A DNA stretch of 64,000 bases from Saccostrea echinata. Taxonomy: Eukaryota. The translations under genes were made by a program, and so were the position numbers. This document shows positions 25,720-59,800 of the stretch, piece after piece. Location: the NCBI RefSeq assembly GCF_033153115.1, contig NW_026889751.1, positions 2,666,001 to 2,730,000 on the forward strand, written 5' to 3'. Under the pieces are notes generated by a model. The model worked only from the letters and a program-made list of their open reading frames with translations. It searched no databases and was not told the origin of the DNA. Each line of letters starts with the position of its first letter. The first letter of the stretch is position 1.

Positions 25720-27022
25720 TTGGGAACTTATCTAAAAAATTAAAACTAGTCACTCATCCAGAAACTGCAAGTCAAATCCAGCATCTGAAGCAAGTTTGAG
25801 AGTGTTCGTCCCTTGATGCATATTCCATGCAAGTTTGGTTCAGATAGGCCTTATAGTTACTTCGAAATGAGATCTGCTCCAAAAACTTCAACCTGGTCAC
25901 TCATCCGGAAAATGTAGGTCAGATCCAGCATCTGAAGCAAGTCCAGTGGTATGCATCCTTAGATGTATCATCCATGCAAGTTTGGTCAATATAGGGCTTA
26001 TAGTTACTTGGAAATGAGATCTGCTCCAAAAACCTCAACCTGGTCAATCATCTGGAAAATGTAGGTCAGATCCAGCATCTGAAGCAAGTCCAGTGGTGTG
26101 CATCCTTAGATGTATCACCCATGCAAGTTTGGTCAATATAGGGCTTATAGTTACTTGGAAATGAGATCTGCTCCAAAAACTTTAACCTGGTCACTCAACC
26201 AGAAAATGTAGGTCAGATCCAGCATCTGAAGCAAGTCCAGTGGTGTGCATCCTTAGACGTATCATCCATGCAAGTTTGGTCAATATAGGGCTTATAGTTA
26301 CTTGGAAATGAGATCTGCTCCAAAAACTTTAACCTGGTCACTCAACCAGAAAATGTAGGTCAGATCCAGCATCTGAAGCAAGTCCAGTGGTGTGCATCCT
26401 TAGACGTATCATCCATGCAAGTTTGGTCAATATAAGGCTTATAATTACTTAGAAATAAGATCTGCTCCAAAAACTTTAACCTGGTCCCTCATCTGGAAAA
26501 AATATAGGTCATATCCAGCATCTGAAGAAAGTCCAATGGTGTGCATCCTTAGGTGTATCATCCATGCAAGTTTGGTCAATATAGGGCTTTTAGTTACTTG
26601 GAAATGAGATCTGCTCCAGAAACTTTAACCTGGTCACTCATCCGGAAAATATAGGTCAGATCAAGCATCCGAAGCAAGTTCAGTAGTGTGCATCCTTAGA
26701 CATATCATCCATGCAAGTTTGGTCAATATAGGGCCTATAGTTACTTGGAAATGAGACCTGCTCCAAAAACTTTAACCTGCACCAAAAACCTTAACCTGCT
26801 CCAAAAACATTAACCTGGTCATTCTTTAGCTGAAATTGCAGCATCTGAAACCTTGACTGGTACATGTATAATGAAACACACTAGAAGCATCCTCCATGCA
26901 TCTCTGATTGATATAGGGCATAGAAGTACTTGAAAAGAAAACTGCTCCAAAAACTTTAACCTGGGACACCGACGCTCAGAGTATTACATAAGCTCCCCCA
27001 ACTTCGTTGAGGTGAGCTAAAA
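25720..27022 (-). repeat. 147-bp tandem array inside a Helentron-like element
   Basis: gatctgctcc(a) recurs at 25871, 26018, 26165, 26312, 26459, 26608, 26755; terminal hairpin ...gaggtgagctaaaa at ~27020. Confidence 0.85.
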
Positions 27023-27876: not shown

Positions 27877-28019
27877 CTCCCAGCTCTGGCTGCTCTACAT
27901 CTTCCTCCCCTCTTCTTCTCTTCATTCCCTCCAGACACTTCTGTTTGTGTTTCTCAGTCTTAAGTTTCTTCTTTCGGACATTCTCGTCCTGTTGTTTCTT
28001 TCGTAGTTCTTTCAGCTTC
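27877..28019 (-). CDS. PPAN: PPAN exon 8
   Basis: KLKELRKKQQDENVRKKKLKTEKHKQKCLEGMKRRRGEEDVEQPELG; phase 2-1. Confidence 0.88.
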
Positions 28020-28246
28020 CTAAAAAAAACCTATAAATTTAATAACACTTCACAAATAACAGGACTTAAATTCCAATTAAATAATTTAGTGATTTTTACA
28101 ACTTGTATATTGTGTGTGGTGTGTGGGTATGAAGGGGGGGGGGGGGGGGGAGGGGGAGACATTAGTTTATCTAACATTTAAAAATGCTCTCTAAAATGAT
28201 GCTTATGATACTTATATGTAGTCATAACCATTAAAAAGCAAGCTAC

Positions 28247-28390
28247 CTCTTTGAATCTCTCAGAGCTTTTAGATCCTTGAGGTCTTTGTCAGTTTTGATG
28301 ACTAGTTCATGAAACATGACCTCCCCCTGACATACACCATCCTCTATCTTCAGCAGCTGTAACGTCATACGGGGACCAATTTCTGTCAAC
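28247..28390 (-). CDS. PPAN: PPAN exon 7 (Brix sigma70-like motif)
   Basis: (R)LTEIGPRMTLQLLKIEDGVCQGEVMFHE carries the diagnostic Brix EIGPR motif. Confidence 0.95.
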
Positions 28391-29046
28391 CTTTCAATAA
28401 ACAAAACAATTTAACTACAAACTTTCACAGAATTATAATGGTACAAGTTGATTATATTTTCTCAACATAAGGCAAAATGTATTCATCTTAAACATGTACA
28501 CAGCACTTTCTGTAAGGAATATTTACTACATGAGACATTACTCTCTAATATGATTTAAATACTAGTACATGTATTTATTGAAGTTGCACTCTAAAAAAAT
28601 AACAGGAAGACTTTGAGCAAATGCTCACTAGTAATACCCCCACTCTGATGTGAATATACACTCTCATGAATCCCACCTAATGGCATGCCTCAACAGTGTG
28701 CTAAAATTTCAAGCATCTGCGATTAGTAGTTGCTGAGAAAACTGCGGCGAAACTTTGTTACGGACAGACACACAGACAGACATATACACACAAGGGTAAA
28801 ACAGTATACCCTCCTCTTCTTCAGTGTGGGGGTATAAAAATTAAGTGGCAATTATTTTTGCAAATTTCTTAAATACAGAATTGAAACTGAACATTAATAT
28901 GCTAAATATAGCTATTTTTCATGTTTTTGAGTACTACTAAACACAAGGGTACAATTTTCTGAAAAATTTTCTGATTGCAAAATTCACATCAACTACTCCT
29001 CAACAGCATTTCCACATTTTTTAACATTTTAAATCCTGCATAAGAA

Positions 29047-29121
29047 AGATCATTCAGAGTGTGTAACATGTCTCTTCATTTATTTCAGAGCCATGGAAGT
29101 AAGGTTTCATCACTATGATCT
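29047..29121 (-). ncRNA. box C/D snoRNA copy A (dual guide, 28S rRNA H43/H44)
   Basis: AGATCAT-A-GTGATGA(C)..ACTTCCATGGCT-CTGA(D')..ATGAAGA(C')..TGTTACACACT-CTGA(D)-ATGATCT; sense within PPAN intron 6. Confidence 0.9.
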
Positions 29122-29597
29122 GGAAAATACTGTATACAGTTTTATTAGTCCCCTACAGGTGAAACCTTTTCTTTCTGTCATTTTGGTTCTTTTTTTCTTC
29201 TATACTCTAGCAGATATTGAGCTGGATTATTGGTATGCGAGTCTACCTTGACAAGTTACAGCTTATGTTTGTATTTCATTCCTCTTTGATGAGATGGATT
29301 TAATGGCTTTTAAGTTTTAAGGGAAACCAGGTTACACTTGCTGGTACTGGTAGGAGAGTAGAATCGCTTATGCAATACTCTCAGAATGCTTTTTTCCATG
29401 AGCAAATTTATATTTTAACTAAAATTATGACATTCAAAACTTAATCAAAAAATCTAAAAAAAAAAAAATTAATGGTGAATAAATAATGAGAAAACTTAAA
29501 AATAATAACAAAACAGATCACAATTCCAAAATTTTCCCTTTGGAAATATATTTGTTTCCATGAATCAATTTTCTATTTCTCTCTGATTATATCAGAA

Positions 29598-29667
29598 GTC
29601 ACTCAGAGTGTGTAACGTGATTCTTCATTTCATCAGAGCCATGGAAGTAAGCTTTCATCACAGTGAC
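29598..29667 (-). ncRNA. box C/D snoRNA copy B
   Basis: GTCACT-GTGATGA..ACTTCCATGGCT-CTGA..ATGAAGA..GTTACACACT-CTGA-GTGAC. Confidence 0.9.
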
Positions 29668-29882
29668 AAGCTATCCTATATAATAAATATTATTTACAGT
29701 GTTTTATGTCTAATTTGTCTTTAAAAAAAAACTTTTTAACATATTTGTCTGAACTTTTTATTTCCCTTTTTCTATTCCCTCTGAACTCTTTCAAACATTA
29801 ATTTCCTTTCTTAAAATGATGTCTGCAATATTACAGTGAACTAGTTCAATAAGTACAAACTTCCATGGACACATACATGCAC

Positions 29883-30315
29883 TAGATAGAACATTCCATT
29901 ATTCAAATGATACTGTCCTATGGACTTGGTTTAATGACAGAATTTGTTCCATATGTTGGCAATGTAGCAAAATAAACAAGAGCAGATAATTCTGAGCTTC
30001 ACAAATACTATGAACAATCCAGAGTTCTGAATGTCATGGTGTATAATTTGAAGCAAGAAAAGACCACTGAGAAAATGTGTTGATTTCTTTCTTTATGTGG
30101 ATTATTTTTTTAGGGTGGAAGACTTGTACAAGCTCAAAAAAATTTTGATTAATTTGATGTTCTTTTGTTTGTTTTTTTTTTTTTCAGTGCAACTTCTTTT
30201 GTATTCCTCAAAATTGTGCCACAGAGGTTTCATTCCAATTTGCTACACTGCAACTATATGGAATGTATTCTAAATGTGGTGAGGGCTTTTCCCGAAACCC
30301 AGCTTATTCTAACTA
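29883..30315. mobile_element. non-autonomous DNA transposon (TAG...CTA ends), same family as 41472-41900
   Basis: Collinear similarity to 41472-41900 over ~430 bp. Confidence 0.7.
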
Positions 30316-30415
30316 GGCACATACTAGAATTTGGTGGTATGATGATTCATTAAATGTTTAAAGACAAAAAGCCAGAACTGATTTCATAAAACAGCAATTA
30401 ATTTCAAATGAAAGA

Positions 30416-30492
30416 CAGATCATTCAGTGTGTGTAACATGGTTCTTCATTTTATTCAGAGCCATGGAAGTATGTTTTCATCACCATGATCTG
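30416..30492 (-). ncRNA. box C/D snoRNA copy C
   Basis: CAGATCAT-G-GTGATGA..ACTTCCATGGCT-CTGA..ATGAAGA..TGTTACACACA-CTGA-ATGATCTG. Confidence 0.9.
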
Positions 30493-30848
30493 GGATATTT
30501 GTCCAACTATACAAGCAAAGGGAAGTAAAAATGTACACTAACACTATTTCATGTTTTTTCACTTATAATACCAGACCGACTACAAAATAAGAACCTCTTA
30601 AAATGTCATTTTGTATTTATACACATTTGATATTGTCCATGAGACTTTGTCTGAAGAGATATGCCCCACTATTGCCATGTATCTGTGTGTACCTGTATGT
30701 CCACAGATATTGCCACTGAATCCTTCTATTTGTGATTAGTTTACAGGCTAAATTTGTGACATGCATAATTTTAAAAAAAAATATGTGTATATTGATAATG
30801 TTTATTTTCTCTTATTATTTGATGGCTTTAAAAGGTACATGTAGTTTA

Positions 30849-30922
30849 GGTCACTCAGTGTGTGTAACAAGGTTCTACATTTTATTTCAGAGCCATGGAA
30901 GTATGTTTTCATCATAGTGACC
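30849..30922 (-). ncRNA. box C/D snoRNA copy D
   Basis: GGTCACT-ATGATGA..ACTTCCATGGCT-CTGA..ATGTAGA..TTGTTACACACA-CTGA-GTGACC. Confidence 0.88.
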
Positions 30923-31035
30923 AAAGTCATGTATTAGTTCTTTTTCAATCAGCTCTGCTGTAAATATTTACATGTACTAGTATCAGTGATACTAATTATT
31001 ATTAGTAATTATTAGTCAGTGAGAAATACTCAAGA

Positions 31036-31108
<73 letters not shown>

Positions 31109-31109
<1 letters not shown>

Positions 31110-32100
31110 CTGTGACAAAGCTCATTCAGAGTGTGTAACAAGTTTCTTAACATGTAAATATATTTATTTTGCTGTGACAAAGCTCATTCAGAGTGTGTAA
31201 CAAGTTTCTTCACATGTAAATATATTTATTTTGCTGTGACAAAGCTCATTCAGAGTGTGTAACAAGTTTCTTCACATGTAAATATATTTATTTTGCTGTG
31301 ACAAAGCTCATTCAGAGTGTGTAACAAGTTTCTTCACATGTAAATATATTTATTTTGCTGTGACAAAGCTCATTCAGAGTGTGTAACAAGTTTCTTCACA
31401 TGTAAATATATTTATTTTGCTGTGACAAAGCTCATTCAGAGTGTGTAACAAGTTTCTTAACATGTAAATATATTTATTTTGCTGTGACAAAGCTCATTCA
31501 GAGTGTGTAACAAGTTTCTTCACATGTAAATATATTTATTTTGCTGTGACAAAGCTCATTCAGAGTGTGTAACAAGTTTCTTCACATGTAAATATATTTA
31601 TTTTGCTGTGACAAAGCTCATTCAGAGTGTGTAACAAGTTTCTTAACATGTAAATATATTTATTTTGCTGTGACAAAGCTCATTCAGAGTGTGTAACAAG
31701 TTTCTTCACATGTAAATATATTTATTTTGCTGTGACAAAGCTCATTCAGAGTGTGTAACAAGTTTCTTCACATGTAAATATATTTATTTTGCTGTGACAA
31801 AGCTCATTCAGAGTGTGTAACAAGTTTCTTAACATGTAAATATCTTTATTTTGCTGTGACAAAGCTCATTCAGAGTGTGTAACAAGTTTCTTCACATGTA
31901 AATATATTTATTTTGCTGTGACAAAGCTCATTCAGAGTGTGTAACAAGTTTCTTCACATGTAAATATCTTTATTTTGCTGTGACAAAGCTCATTCAGAGT
32001 GTGTAACAAGTTTCTTCACATGTAAATATATTTATTTTGCTGTGACAAAGCTCATTCAGAGTGTGTAACAAGTTTCTTCACATGTAAATATCTTTATTTT
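31109..32100 (-). repeat. 16 x 62-bp minisatellite made of the 3' half of the snoRNA
   Basis: Unit gctgtgacaaagctcattcagagtgtgtaacaagtttcttcacatgtaaatatatttatttt; 992/62 = 16; runs directly into snoRNA copy E. Confidence 0.95.
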
Positions 32101-32104
32101 GCTG

Positions 32105-32191
32105 TGACAAAGCTCATTCAGAGTGTGTAACAAGTTTTCTTCACAAGTCTCAGAGCCATGGAAGTAAGCTTTCATCATAATGACTCTGTCA
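32105..32191 (-). ncRNA. box C/D snoRNA copy E
   Basis: TGACAGAGTCATT-ATGATGA..ACTTCCATGGCT-CTGA..GTGAAGA..TTGTTACACACT-CTGA-ATGAGCTTTGTCA. Confidence 0.88.
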
Positions 32192-32268
32192 CTGATATCA
32201 TTTTCATCATAATGACTCTGTCACTGATATCATTTTCATCATAATGACTCTGTCACTGATATCATTTT
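32171..32268 (-). repeat. 3 x 32-bp repeat of the snoRNA 5' end (stem + C box)
   Basis: ttcatcataatgactctgtcactgatatcatt at 32171, 32203 and 32235. Confidence 0.9.
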
Positions 32269-32297
32269 CCTTGAGGAACTTCTCAGTTCTACTTTAC

Positions 32298-32920
32298 CAG
32301 GGATTTTTTTAGGGTCTCTCTGGGGCCGAAATTCGGCCCCATTCCCAATGCTGAAAAGTGCATGTTTTTCCCAAAATTAGACCTAAAAATTCCCAATATA
32401 AAAAAAGTATTTAAAAGTTGTAAATTATTAAAATAAAATAAGACAAAAAAGGTGTTTATGTTATGTTCTCTATGTGCGATGTACGAGCCATCCGAGGAGT
32501 TTCAAGAAGTTATTCGAAATACTACAGATGTTTGCATGCATACTTTTTAAAGCGGGATCGATGTTTAAATATTAAAGTCGGGATCGTTATTTAATAAATA
32601 AACGTGCATCATGTCAGTCTCTCCAGTTTGACGGTAATTTTCAGGCTGGGTTGAATCACTTTTATTCTTATAAATTGGTCAAACAATACCGATTAACCAC
32701 TCATCTGGAACAAACAGCTGCTATTATTTCATATCACTAAAGCTTGTTTAAGCCAGCTTCATACTAAAAAAAAATAAGAAAAATGATTAAATATTTGACT
32801 TTTGCCTGTTTCTTCCTATTTATTTCTATGAAGATATTTTTCCTAATTTCAACCAAATATCACTATTTTTCCCAATCTTGACTGTCCCGGCCCCTGGAAT
32901 CAAAGGGTAAAAAATCCTTG
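32298..32920. mobile_element. MITE (CAGGG...CCTTG ends)
   Basis: cagggattttt / aaaaatccttg ends; ttcccaa subterminal motifs. Confidence 0.45.
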
Positions 32921-33780
32921 TTTACTGCATTCACATTGGTAAATGTACCCTGACACACCTAAGAAAACTTGCATCATTGATGTTTATCTATGAAACTCTA
33001 AACAGCCTTGATGTTGACCCTTTTCAAGACTTCAAGTATGGTCCTCTCTATGTATTCTAGATGCTGCCCACACTGGGGTTGTATCACTAGATATTTTACC
33101 TGATGGCACTTTAAGCAGCCTTGATGTTGCCTCTACTTCAGACCTTTATCGTTTATCACTAGTTATTAAATGATCAGAAACACTGATGTTCTCTGATTGG
33201 TCTAGACTGTCTTTCCTGAGGTGTACCTCAGAAAGAGTTCACCTCAAAATGAAGTTCCGAGACATTTATTCCAGTTTTCTCTCTTCACCAACCATAGATT
33301 TTTTATCGAACAATCAAATTGCATGTTTTAGAGCATGTGTTGTTGTGAATGGTAGTATTGAAGAGACTAAAATCTTTATTGTTTTATAATTTTGTTCCTT
33401 TTTTTAAACAGTTCTTAAACTATGTTGAAATATAATTATGATATGTTGTTACACATTATATTTTGAGTGTTAACATATTTTAGAGACAATCAATGTTGCA
33501 AAATCCCTTAGTATTTGATAAAAGGATTATTAACTTTAGATTTCAGTCTTCTCAAGACCATACGGTCATGGTCAGGTTTGTATAGTCACAAAAAGACCTC
33601 ATCAATAGTCAATAACTGTATAAAGTTATATCAGATGGCACGACACTCTTTGAATCACTGATGTCACCCCTACCTCAGGATTGTGTCACTAGATGTTGAT
33701 GTTGTCCCTACCTCACTAGATGTTAACCTTATGGCACTTTTAGCAGCTTTGACGTTGCCCCTACCTCACTAGATATTTAC

Positions 33781-33894
33781 CTGATGGCACTTTTAGCAGC
33801 TTTGATGTTGCCCCTACTTCTGATGTCTTGGGGTAAGACCACTTCATTATGCTCTCCATCCAGTTCTGCTTCACTCTCTGAGAGGTTACCTCCC
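33781..33894 (-). CDS. PPAN: PPAN exon 6
   Basis: GGNLSESEAELDGEHNEVVLPQDIRSRGNIKAAKSAIR contains the conserved SESE and LPQ..RGN..SAIRL motifs. Confidence 0.93.
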
Positions 33895-34015
33895 CTATAA
33901 ATTCAAATACACAATGTACATGTATTTAAGAACATATTTCCTGTCTATGTATTTTAAGATTTTTTTTTTTAAAAATACTTCAGTAATACTTTTTTTTAGT
34001 ACTTGATAGCCAAAA

Positions 34016-35304: not shown

Positions 35305-35593
35305 CTCATCACAGGATACTCCTACATTGTAAATGATTATTTCATCATAAGATATTCCTATATTGCTAATGTTTATTTCATCATAAGATACTCCTACCTT
35401 GTTAATGTTTATTTCATCACAAGATATTCCTATATTGCTAATGTTTATTTCATCATAAGATACTCCTACCTTGTTAATGTTTATTTAATCACAAGATATT
35501 CCTATATTGCTAATGTTTATTTCATCATAAGATACTCCTACCTTGTTAATGATTATTTCATCATAAGATACTCCTACCTTGTTAATGTTTATT
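35305..35593 (-). repeat. ~8 x 36-bp tandem repeat spanning the PPAN exon 3 donor
   Basis: Unit AACATTAACAAG|GTAGGAGTATCTTATGATGAAATA with two alternating variants. Confidence 0.85.
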
Positions 35594-57399: not shown

Positions 57400-59800
57400 A
57401 AGTTTTAGGAAGTATATGTTTAAATTAAATGGCAATCTTAAATGATTAAAGCGTAGGAAAACTTAGTAAATAGTTCTAGTCTAATACTAGTAGTTGAAGG
57501 GAGAAAACTATTCATGTATGAAGTTGTTCTGGCTTGTGAAATATATGAGTGTCCTGGTTCCAGAATGGAACAGAATTGTATGGTATAAAACACAGCTTAA
57601 GTAAGTCTTGCAAGTACTGAGGAGCTAATCCATGGACTATTTTATCAAATAATACGTTTATGTATTTTTCTTCTAATTTCCAAGGTATCCTATCAAAGCT
57701 CTTCCTTTAGCATTGATGTTGATGAATTTATCATTTGCGCAGCTGCAACTTGAACATCTTCCAAGTAATTTCGCATCTCTGTCTGAACATCAATTATCCC
57801 AAACAATTAATATCTGAGAATTCAAGATGAGAACGGACAAAAGCAAAATAAATTTCAATCAATGACTCCCTCTTAAGGGTACAGTGTATGCTTTAACATT
57901 CTTAAGATATTTCATCAGGTACATGCTTTAACATGAAAATCAAATTAAATATGTGAGTTCTCCACCTACCATTCTGTTGAAATCTTATTCCCAAATGAGT
58001 ATGTGTGTTTCAACATTTTGAATTGTTGGTCCATCTTCACCAAATTTAACATTGGGATGATATATAATTTCCTTGCTAAAATGTAACTTAACTGTTTTAT
58101 TTGGATTGAAATCTACTGCCAAGGCAGCACTGCTTGATTTTTTTTACAGGATTCTTGGTTAATATATTTGTAGAATTAGTCATGCCATCATCAACTATTA
58201 CATAAAGAGACGTCTGCAAAAAGTACGGAAGCCGGTTGGTGCCAGGTAGAAAAAATATTTTATCTGGCTATACCTCAACACATTTTGTTTACGTCATGAG
58301 TGCACAGATTCATCATCAGTCGAAGCAGAAGTTTTCACACACATAGACAATGTGAGTTTGCTACATGTTTCTGCTGTGAGATTTGTTATATTTTCAGATC
58401 ATGATTGAATTAATCGGACTGACGTATATAACTGGTTCCAACTTCCGCCCACCGTCATGGCCGTTCCTATGCGCGTCCACCACATTTAGAGACACATAGT
58501 GGATGCGGCTTTCAGGCTTACCAGTAGGCTCAATTAATGGACTTGCTTGATATATATCTGATTATTTTGTTTGAAACTCAATTATTATGCTGTGAACATC
58601 TGTTCCCAGGGTTCACCGATGGCATTTTAAGGGATGCCATATATGGCTATATATTGATGCCTCGGCTCCCTCATTTTAAGCGGCCATGGCCCATTCAGCC
58701 AAATAAAAACAAATTCAGTCTTATATTTTCTTGTTATATTTACTTGTTGAATTTACTGGGTATACTGACACTCCGATCCCCTTTAACTTTCATCTTTGAT
58801 AGGTTTGAATATACTTTTCCTAAAATGCATATAACCGAAGTTATTGATATTGGCCGACAATAGTTTACACCATTATCGTATTTTTAAAAATGTGAGTAAT
58901 TTGTAATTTTTTTTCCAAATTTCTAAAAGTTGACCAAGTGTAAAGCAAAAATTGAAGAGTTGGTTACTATTTTTTGTTTATAAGTGGAGACAATTATATA
59001 ATCTGGACCTGGAGATTTGGTTAGGCCTATGTTTATTACTTGAAGCTGATCCAATACTTCTTGTTCTGTAATCATAAAGTCATTAAATAAGTAATTTTAT
59101 GGTGGCCCTGGTCCACGTAATGGCACTTCTGGATCATTACATATGGATGATACTCCAGTAATGTCTTCATTTAGCAGGTTAGCGTTATCAACAAAGATTT
59201 TACAATTTTCGCACTTTTCTAGGAGGTATGGATGTAAATATTTGGTTTCAAAGATTGTGCCTATTTCATAAGACCCTAATTCCAGCAATGACGTTGTTTA
59301 CTAAGTGAGGACACTGTTTCCAGTGATAAACGTTTTGAGTCTTTACAGCTTTATGCACATACAATTTATATTTTCTAATATTGTTCATAACTAAACACGG
59401 TTATAGTTTTGGTTGGGATATGTTCTCTGTGCTTGTTTTATGTTTACAAAGTTTGCATTTATTCAATCGGTTGATTCCGCTACGCTCCATACAAACCTCG
59501 GATGTGATTGGTGGAAGAATATGCATCAAATCGATGCATTTCTCAGATGGAATTGCCTTTTAACTCATTTCGTATTTCGCTCAGCATTAGGTTCACCGAA
59601 ATAGTTTTCTCATTCTTTTCACATTCTTTCTTGTATATTGGTTTTGATTACAACCACCTGTTGGTAGGCTTTGAAAGCGGAAACATAGTGTTGAGCGTGC
59701 CACAAAGAAACTTGGATTTCAAAGGAATAATATTTGGAGGAATTTTGAATTGGATCACATGATGGTAGAGCCCCGTTCACGTCCGAGGTTAGTGAGCGAG
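57400..59800 (-). mobile_element. decayed CR1/L2-type LINE, interrupted at ~58226-58786
   Basis: Remnants ITEQEVLDQLQ..KSPGPD, NYCRPISITSVIC, LFAD.SLYV, WAVDFNPNKT, HLGIRFQQNGRWRTHI, FVRSHLEF. Confidence 0.8.

Follow-up and report, generated by a model that had tools for sequence, protein, structure and literature searches.

The PPAN gene of Saccostrea echinata, a ribosome-biogenesis gene, carries within one intron five box C/D snoRNA genes. They probably form a single-locus family of functional guides, co-transcribed with PPAN, that directs Am1490 and Um1517 in 28S rRNA. All coordinates refer to the window, the 64,000-nucleotide stretch of DNA that was analysed. The host gene lies on the minus strand and encodes a Brix domain (Pfam); the best named homologue of its protein is "suppressor of SWI4 1 homolog", which is PPAN/SSF1. 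A search with single-exon protein returned close relatives at 88-90% identity (P0001-P0003) as well as full-length homologues. The relevant parts of the gene are as follows.

33783 to 33896, minus strand: PPAN exon 5' of the snoRNA-bearing intron, located by tblastn with P0007/P0014 and by the splice join
28393 to 33782, minus strand: host intron of the Brix/PPAN gene, 5,390 nt, housing all snoRNA copies (spliced RNA contigs)
28241 to 28392, minus strand: PPAN exon 3' of the intron, with the end of the Brix domain (Pfam, tblastn, RNA contigs)

Spliced RNA contigs join 28392 to 33783, and the intron is therefore 28393-33782. The exon on its 3' side is covered by spliced contigs at a depth of 35-130, whose loose ends correspond to 33783-33812 and 27984-28013. 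PPAN is expressed and its RNA is spliced, and the intron itself is transcribed: low-depth contigs overlie copy 1 (29051-29437 and 29016-29170), copy 3 (30291-30988, 30414-30878 and 30402-30612) and copy 4. None overlies copy 2, which is uninformative. The contigs were assembled from ordinary RNA libraries, which are blind to RNA ends and small RNAs. A sequence-only reading of this DNA had placed five elements in the sense direction in PPAN intron 6. The number, the orientation and the host stand, but tblastn exon mapping makes the intron the fifth between detectable coding exons; a sixth place would require a further exon upstream.

We found five full box C/D elements of 74-77 nt, all on the minus strand and sense to Brix/PPAN. 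Scores are from a covariance model (CM) of the five copies.

29047 to 29122, minus strand: copy 1, 76 nt; C box GTGATGA, D' box CTGA, C' box TGAAGA, D box CTGA; 18-nt D' spacer ending ACTTCCATGGCT and 15-nt D spacer ending GTTACACACT; 101 bits
29597 to 29670, minus strand: copy 2, 74 nt; boxes and guides as in copy 1; 93.7 bits
30417 to 30492, minus strand: copy 3, 76 nt; stem AGATCAT/ATGATCT; 102.7 bits
30848 to 30923, minus strand: copy 4, 76 nt; C box ATGATGA, C' box TGTAGA, stem GGTCAC/GTGACC; 96.9 bits
32098 to 32200, minus strand, core 32111-32186: copy 5, extended bulged stem; 84 bits

Box order and spacing are canonical in all five copies. Each has a RUGAUGA C box near its 5' end (GTGATGA or ATGATGA), a CUGA near its 3' end, a short terminal stem and internal D' and C' boxes. 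The D' and D boxes read CTGA throughout, and the C' box reads TGAAGA but TGTAGA in copy 4, degenerate as is usual for C'; the D'-C' loop is short, at 5-7 nt. The terminal stem of copy 1, AGATCAT/ATGATCT, is retained in its MFE fold, copy 2 has the compensatory variant GTCAC/GTGAC, and the stem of copy 5 is a bulged one of about 14 bp (GTGACAGAGTCAT / ATGAGCTTTGTCAC). The D guide of copy 4 is CTTGTTACACACA, then CTGA; that of copy 3 ends in ...ACACACA, which leaves guide position 1 unpaired. Judged by their sequence, these elements are box C/D snoRNAs. The family signature is the C box, the D' guide CTTCCATGGC, CTGA, an interval, GTTACACAC and CTGA. The D' guide followed by CTGA and then the D guide gave 5 matches, against 0 in 100 shuffles, and the core ACTTCCATGGC occurs 5 times where 0.02 would be expected.

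Comparison of the copies shows what has been kept. All copies share a 17-nt block (TACTTCCATGGCTCTGA), GTTACACAC and the D box without change, and the spacers vary. The columns free of variation coincide exactly with the boxes and the two guide cores, and no other unchanged stretch of the snoRNA is as long as the D'-guide block. Pairing reaches 88% of cells in the terminal stem, compared with 26-42% when the partner strand is slid. Two stem pairs are altered on both sides (A-U/G-C and U-A/C-G), although such changes are confined to two stem types and may therefore reflect few events. The copy bodies are 78-89% identical, whereas the 80-nt flanks score 0.41-0.63, no more alike than random 80-mers from the window (0.49 +/- 0.04). 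Bodies this similar between flanks at the random level are a signature of purifying selection. The sequence-only reading had described the four boxes and the stem, invariant guide cores with drifting spacers, compensatory stem changes and selection on the RNA, and each of these points was borne out: by parsing of all five copies, by column comparison, by the two double-sided changes and by the contrast of bodies with flanks.

The family occurs in this intron alone. In the 923-Mb genome, the C box plus D' guide pattern occurs 5 times and the C' plus D guide pattern 17 times, all in the PPAN intron, and a whole-genome search with the five-copy covariance model gave no further locus. Weak CM hits at 57965-58028 of the window and at C9:38011304 were rejected, as inspection revealed no C/D boxes. 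In metagenome and GTDB genome collections, the two-guide pattern had 0 matches. The C box plus D' guide pattern had 156 there; the second guide is missing from all of them and a single bacterial gene accounts for the majority, and we therefore regard them as chance matches.

We then looked for targets in the species' own rDNA (18S-ITS-5.8S-28S), numbering 28S from its Rfam-defined start in G000:C107. The top match of every D' guide is 28S A1490, and that of every D guide is U1517. Both guides pair with the 5' strand and loop of a hairpin: the D' guide with those of H43, in a duplex of 12 bp (11 Watson-Crick pairs and one G.U), and the D guide with those of H44, in one of 10-12 bp that is longest in copy 5 (12 bp). 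Both D and D' are thus preceded by at least 10 nt of rRNA complementarity with a target opposite the fifth nucleotide, a rule that picks the A in GGCC-A-UGG and the second U in AGUG-U-GUAAC. The predicted products are Am1490 and Um1517. A1490, which corresponds to E. coli 1065, is the first base of the H43 loop, and U1517, which corresponds to E. coli 1092, belongs to the pair that closes the H44 hexaloop. The two sites are 27 nt apart; in the Rfam LSU consensus structure one falls in the loop of H43 and the other in the stem-loop of H44. Shuffled guides reach the same Watson-Crick runs at 0.001 (D') and 0.003 (D), and two runs of at least 8 bp within 60 nt were seen in 0/5000. The 28S sequence across H43-H44 that the earlier reading had given is the one in the S. 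echinata genome; its guides match there in both hairpins, and its D+5 prediction chose the same A and U. Elongation factors, uL11 and the P-stalk dock at H43/H44. The same rRNA segment is the stalk-base/Mrt4-binding fragment used in PMC13077063.

These observations suggest a course of events. The five snoRNA genes would be co-transcribed with PPAN, and splicing followed by exonucleolytic trimming would free the copies from the intron. Each released copy would assemble into a fibrillarin snoRNP, in which the D' guide would pair with H43, placing A1490 opposite the fifth nucleotide upstream of D', and the D guide with H44, placing U1517 at the fifth position. We infer the accumulation of mature snoRNA, both methylations and any simultaneous binding to the two sites.

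The closest known RNA comes from plants. Rfam gave no match at gathering thresholds across the whole window, and at E <= 10 it gave only sub-threshold generic C/D matches (SNORD79, SNORD100, SNORD102 and snoR11). The snoR11 alignment is the only one of those printed that runs through a whole guide; the copies score 19.4-22.9 bits against this family (RF00349), whose gathering threshold is 50. Plant snoR11/Z151, which is SnoR22, is a dual guide for Arabidopsis 25S Am1263 and Um1278. It too is a box C/D RNA with both guides aimed at H43/H44 of the GTPase centre, and it too is multi-copy and clustered. Its Rfam-consensus D guide (UUUGUUACACACA followed by CUGA) equals copy 4 in 16/17 letters, is aligned with ours at posterior probability '*' and targets the same H44 uridine: Arabidopsis G1277-U1278-G1279 aligns with the S. 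echinata 28S, and the letters around 1251, 1263 and 1278 are in the same register (9/9). The other guide differs. The D' guide of snoR11 (...UUAGCGGAUUUC) is complementary to the 3' strand of H43 and directs methylation of A1263, 12 nt further downstream than the A predicted in S. echinata, where a guide ending ACTTCCATGGCT targets the first loop base; the spacing of the targets is 15 nt in snoR11 and 27 nt in the PPAN-intron family. snoR11 also belongs to a different kingdom, and its genes lie in a polycistronic cluster instead of an intron of PPAN. A comparison of this kind does not separate homology from convergence, because the guide sequence is dictated by its target.

What is new is accordingly narrower than the sequence-only reading had supposed. 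It had proposed a possibly undescribed modification system, at sites not known from human and yeast Nm maps, and had pointed to Rfam and plant guides as a check. The segment is indeed described in a review as unmodified in human and yeast (PMC8351944), fly and planarian maps have no Nm in H43/H44, and no Rfam family reached threshold. The snoR11 consensus, by contrast, has nearly the same D guide, and Arabidopsis 25S Um1278 is already known to be fully methylated (MethScore about 0.96) under snoRNA guidance, with Am1263 as a second methylated base, in H43; both are guided by SnoR22/SnoR11. Plants are therefore known to use a single snoRNA with guides to both hairpins, and the arrangement is not unprecedented; a dual guide of this kind in an animal, together with the A site, is apparently new. 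Among other dual-guide RNAs, U24, U36 and SnoR44 likewise have two antisense elements with sites a few tens of nucleotides apart, but in different rRNA regions, and the fly and planarian maps place none of them in H43/H44. Human SNORD105 guides an 18S site, and its family model gave no match in our Rfam scans even at E <= 10. SNORD105/105B is nonetheless an intronic box C/D RNA with the same host, PPAN (PMC8649375). A full-text literature search with the guide and target letters turned up no paper on snoRNAs; its sole match was the Mrt4-binding rRNA probe. We found no mollusc snoRNA catalogue.

We considered other ways to explain the locus. One is that only the D guide is catalytic, directing Um1517, with the D' guide serving as extra base-pairing or as a chaperone that opens H43 and leaves A1490 unmethylated. 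The Arabidopsis counterpart of the A site is predicted for SnoR72 yet is unmethylated, so complementarity alone is no guarantee of modification. Neighbouring targets of dual-guide snoRNAs may also bind cooperatively, each aiding the other (Wu et al. 2021), and the degenerate C' box (UGAAGA/UGUAGA) and very short D'-C' spacer fit the same idea. Yet the D' box and its 12-nt duplex are in perfect fifth-position register in 5/5 copies, and the D' block is the longest invariant stretch, as expected of a working guide. We judge a single catalytic guide unlikely. Decaying local duplicates, whether pseudo-snoRNAs or a repeat, that accumulate no RNA and match rRNA as a relic are less probable still. 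Mature RNA is absent from the assembled contigs, which come from ordinary libraries blind to small RNAs, and snoRNA fragments at this locus tend to be amplified in tandem. Against decay, sequence identity between the flanks has fallen to the random level with boxes and guides unchanged in 5/5 copies, the terminal stem covaries, and the genome has no other source of these guides. Least probable of all, and to our minds barely credible, is a main target other than rRNA, such as the PPAN pre-mRNA or another RNA, or a role as a small-RNA source: nothing specific supports it, and two independent guides match neighbouring sites in one rRNA domain far beyond chance.

A broader reading, which we also judge unlikely, is that GTPase-centre methylation is either an old eukaryotic trait or one repeatedly re-invented, and that the snoRNA clamps H43 and H44. 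Yeast, fly and vertebrates would then be without the trait, and this animal lineage would have retained or regained it with a new site in the H43 loop. Transient, simultaneous binding to the 5' strands and loops of both hairpins would set the time at which, in the course of pre-60S assembly, the stalk base folds and uL11 and Mrt4/P0 are loaded. Since the snoRNA is expressed from PPAN, the gene of a pre-60S factor, guide and assembly factor would arise in step. If the favoured reading of functional guides for Am1490 and Um1517 holds, an amplified, selected animal guide for two GTPase-centre riboses would extend a precedent so far confined to plants and would add an A site so far without reported methylation. 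A single locus with two predicted sites offers a clean test case for a tuning effect of GTPase-centre Nm on factor binding or on the assembly of the stalk. PPAN emerges as a recurrent snoRNA host whose cargo is lineage-specific, and the known workings of C/D snoRNAs are unchanged by the finding.

The intron also holds two tandem arrays of snoRNA fragments. Both fall in the span covered by the sequence-only reading, whose text does not mention them.

31096 to 32145, minus strand: tandem array of the 3' half of copy 5, 62 nt x 16.9, 98% identical
32170 to 32269, minus strand: tandem array of the 5' end of copy 5, 32 nt x 3.1, 100% identical

The 62-nt unit consists of a C'-like box, the D guide, the D box, the 3' stem strand and a spacer, without a C box or D' guide, and its CM scores are only 22-30 bits. 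The matches to the C' plus D guide pattern are the 5 full copies and 12 of these units; the remaining units have TTAAGA in place of the C'-like TGAAGA. The 32-nt array is a triplication of the 5' stem strand and C box of copy 5.

Reading of 28800-32500 places the elements on the minus strand, and a gapped pattern combining the two guide cores gave exactly five matches, against 0 expected. All five lie in a single intron of the Brix-domain gene PPAN, and each is a box C/D snoRNA unit.

29047-29122, minus strand, copy 1, gapped two-guide pattern
29597-29670, minus strand, copy 2, gapped two-guide pattern
30417-30492, minus strand, copy 3, gapped two-guide pattern
30848-30923, minus strand, copy 4, gapped two-guide pattern
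32111-32186, minus strand, copy 5, gapped two-guide pattern

Each unit begins with the 5′ strand of the terminal stem and a C box, GUGAUGA or AUGAUGA. A spacer of 18 nt, with ACUUCCAUGGCU at its 3′ end, leads to the D′ box CUGA; a loop of 5-7 nt, the C′ box UGAAGA (UGUAGA in copy 4), a spacer of 15-16 nt with GUUACACAC(U/A) at its 3′ end, the D box CUGA and the 3′ stem strand then follow. The layout is the canonical one for box C/D RNAs. The terminal stem is preserved by MFE folding in 4 of the 5 copies, and copy 5 has an extended stem of about 14 bp. In copies 1, 3 and 4, a short internal stem could also close the D′/C′ motif, by pairing of CCAUGG, a palindrome within the D′ guide, with (C/A)CAUG immediately 5′ to the D guide. 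Since copies 2 and 5 lack this stem, it is probably not selected.

The Rfam eukaryotic LSU model locates four copies of 28S in this assembly; the two target strings occur once each in 28S, 27 nt apart. We then scanned the guides of every copy against the whole 18S-ITS-5.8S-28S unit, taking position 2 upstream of the box as the pairing anchor. In 5/5 copies the best match of the D′ guide is 28S A1490, with 11 Watson-Crick pairs and a G.U at position 1, and that of the D guide is 28S U1517, with 10-12 bp. The next-best rRNA matches reach only 8-9 bp, G.U pairs included. Under Watson-Crick-only scoring, shuffled guides attain such lengths in 0.1% (D′) and 0.3% (D) of trials, and no shuffle pair (0/5000) gave two runs of at least 8 bp within 60 nt. 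In the Rfam LSU consensus structure, the 9-nt loop of H43 begins with A1490, and U1517 belongs to the closing pair of the H44 hexaloop. We take these nucleotides to be E. coli 1065 and 1092, from a gap-free alignment to the E. coli 1051-1108 fragment. The sequence-only reading had named the same two positions and proposed that both guides target the GTPase-associated centre of 28S, and the alignment and the scan agree with it. The same rRNA stretch has served as an Mrt4-binding probe (PMC13077063), and is therefore independently identified as the stalk base.

The units also carry marks of selection on the RNA. Their bodies, about 75 nt long, are 78-89% identical in pairwise comparison, whereas identities of the 80-nt flanks (0.41-0.63, global alignment) are no better than those of random 80-mers from the window (0.49 ± 0.04). 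The duplications are therefore old enough to have scrambled neutral sequence, though the bodies persist. Invariant columns comprise the C box, a 17-nt block of the D′ guide and D′ box, the core of the D guide and the D box; variable ones lie in the spacers and the loop. In the terminal stem, 88% of cells are paired, compared to 26-42% with the partner strand slid. Two of its pairs have changed in both partners, one from A-U to G-C and the other from U-A to C-G, bearing out the compensatory stems GATCAT/ATGATC and GTCAC/GTGAC noticed earlier. There are only two stem types, copies 1 and 3 versus copies 2 and 4; unlike this grouping, spacer and guide-end letters set 3 and 4 against 1, 2 and 5. 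Such mosaic kinship points to gene conversion among the copies or to recurrent compensatory change, and independent compensatory events appear to be few in number.

A covariance model of the five copies found no other convincing match in the window or the genome. Across the 923-Mb assembly, C box + D′ guide + D′ box has 5 exact pattern matches and C′ box + D guide + D box has 17 (the five full copies and 12 array units), all within the PPAN intron; reversed-pattern controls gave 0. If a guide methylates A1490 and U1517, this locus is its source. Pattern scans of metagenomes and prokaryote genomes returned chance matches only. The array units are tandem repeats of parts of copy 5, in two young arrays that flank it:

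31096-32145, minus strand, array of about 17 62-nt units, 98% identical, with the C′-like box, D guide, D box and 3′ stem strand of copy 5
32170-32269, minus strand, array of three 32-nt units, 100% identical, with the 5′ stem strand and C box of copy 5

The 62-nt units have neither C box nor D′ guide, and their covariance-model scores are 22-30 bits; in some, the C′-like TGAAGA is replaced by TTAAGA. Identity of 98-100% points to a very recent expansion or an assembly effect. We read the units as probable products of recent slippage or unequal crossover with no demonstrated function. A half-size RNP is conceivable, at low odds, from a C′-like GUGAAGA and a D box with a flanking 3-bp CAU/AUG stem. 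Directly next to the 62-nt array, at its start, lies an (AT)35 microsatellite (31038-31107).

In Rfam, every family stays below its gathering score. Most of the sub-threshold alignments listed (SNORD79, SNORD100, SNORD98 and others) match in the boxes and, at best, over a small piece of a guide, and the one listed for SNORD102 and copy 5 does not run through a guide. The exception is snoR11 (R11/Z151), at 22.9 bits versus a gathering score of 50, whose consensus D guide UUUGUUACACACA plus CUGA agrees with copy 4 in 16/17 letters. This match is explained by plant snoR22/SnoR11 guiding methylation of the same uridine. A published Nm table lists A1260 and U1275 with snoR22 as guide for both. In Arabidopsis, the same two sites, numbered A1263 and U1278, have MethScores of ~0.96 and guides "SnoR11.1; SnoR22", and SnoR22 is among six snoRNAs with two guides to sites 11-18 nt apart, possibly bound simultaneously (Wu et al., PMC8053127). 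The per-position table of that study reads C1250-A1251-U1252, A1262-A1263-U1264 and G1277-U1278-G1279; by a conserved-sequence count in which 9/9 letters fit, A1251 is our A site and U1278 our U site. For A1251, SnoR72 is predicted as the guide and Nm is scored "No" (Wu et al., PMC8053127). Thus, the U site and the use of one RNA for both hairpins are already established in plants, and the A site has no known methylation there. The Drosophila 28S map has no Nm between Am1347 and Cm1679, which flank the target region, and in a planarian list the interval from Am1266 to Cm1587 is likewise free of further Nm. The human and yeast maps are not known to show Nm in this segment. A review likewise leaves it unmodified in both (PMC8351944). 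Human PPAN hosts SNORD105 (PMC8649375), which shares the host gene but, in Rfam scans, is unrelated in sequence to the five copies. Our literature search found no mollusc snoRNA catalogue.

These units are likely a working C/D snoRNA family, predicted to methylate A1490 and U1517 during pre-60S maturation. Each guide would pair with the 5′ strand and loop of one of the neighboring hairpins H43 and H44, so that the bound guides would necessarily keep both unfolded until release; the 15-nt linker between the target stretches would let both be held simultaneously. The main rival, which has a modest chance of being right, keeps only the D guide catalytic and makes the D′ guide an accessory pairing element. 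That the copies are decay products is very improbable, and a role of the RNAs outside rRNA still more so; both fit poorly with the selection pattern and the target statistics. The elements of the sequence-only reading are real and its sequence-level interpretation is right, but the plant precedent takes away part of its novelty. The PPAN-intron copies form a new family of predicted guides, apparently the first in an animal for the GTPase-associated centre, and seemingly carry one new predicted target site.

The host assignment comes from a Brix domain on minus-strand ORFs around the snoRNA region; in a single-exon protein search, homologues of a 103-aa exon include "suppressor of SWI4 1 homolog" (PPAN/SSF1). 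For transcripts, we used assembled contigs from four public runs that belong to a single study. The stretch 28241-28392 is spanned exactly, at a depth of 35-130, by contigs 0.8-1.5 kb long, which run on into sequence located at 33783-33812 and 27984-28013. Because they join 28241-28392 to distant sequence, the runs represent spliced RNA. This sets the snoRNA intron at 28393-33782, the fifth between detectable coding exons when exons are mapped with two homologues; the sequence-only reading called it intron 6, a difference without consequence here. Intronic contigs lie at low depth (2-5x) over copy 1 and copies 3-4; among the assembled contigs of the four runs, none lies above copy 2. Two low-depth contigs begin at 29051 and 30414, each within 2-3 nt of a snoRNA 3′ end (copy 1 and copy 3, respectively), and extend upstream. 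These starts would fit 3′-trimmed processing intermediates, though contigs cannot establish ends. Elsewhere in the intron, summed RNA-contig depth is very high at 28590-28880 (hundreds to 1,700), with many short contigs 90-95% alike and odd joints; the stretch probably belongs to a dispersed repeat or a fragment of a transposon with expression from other loci. At 35485-35578 (minus strand), the frame stays open just beyond the donor site of the Brix exon, and a short motif, VGVSYDE..., is duplicated. Downstream of PPAN, 25772-26470 (minus strand) holds a repeat of five tandem units of ~147 nt, each with a near-identical 36-42-aa ORF (MTRLKFLEQISFPSNYKPYIDQTCM...).
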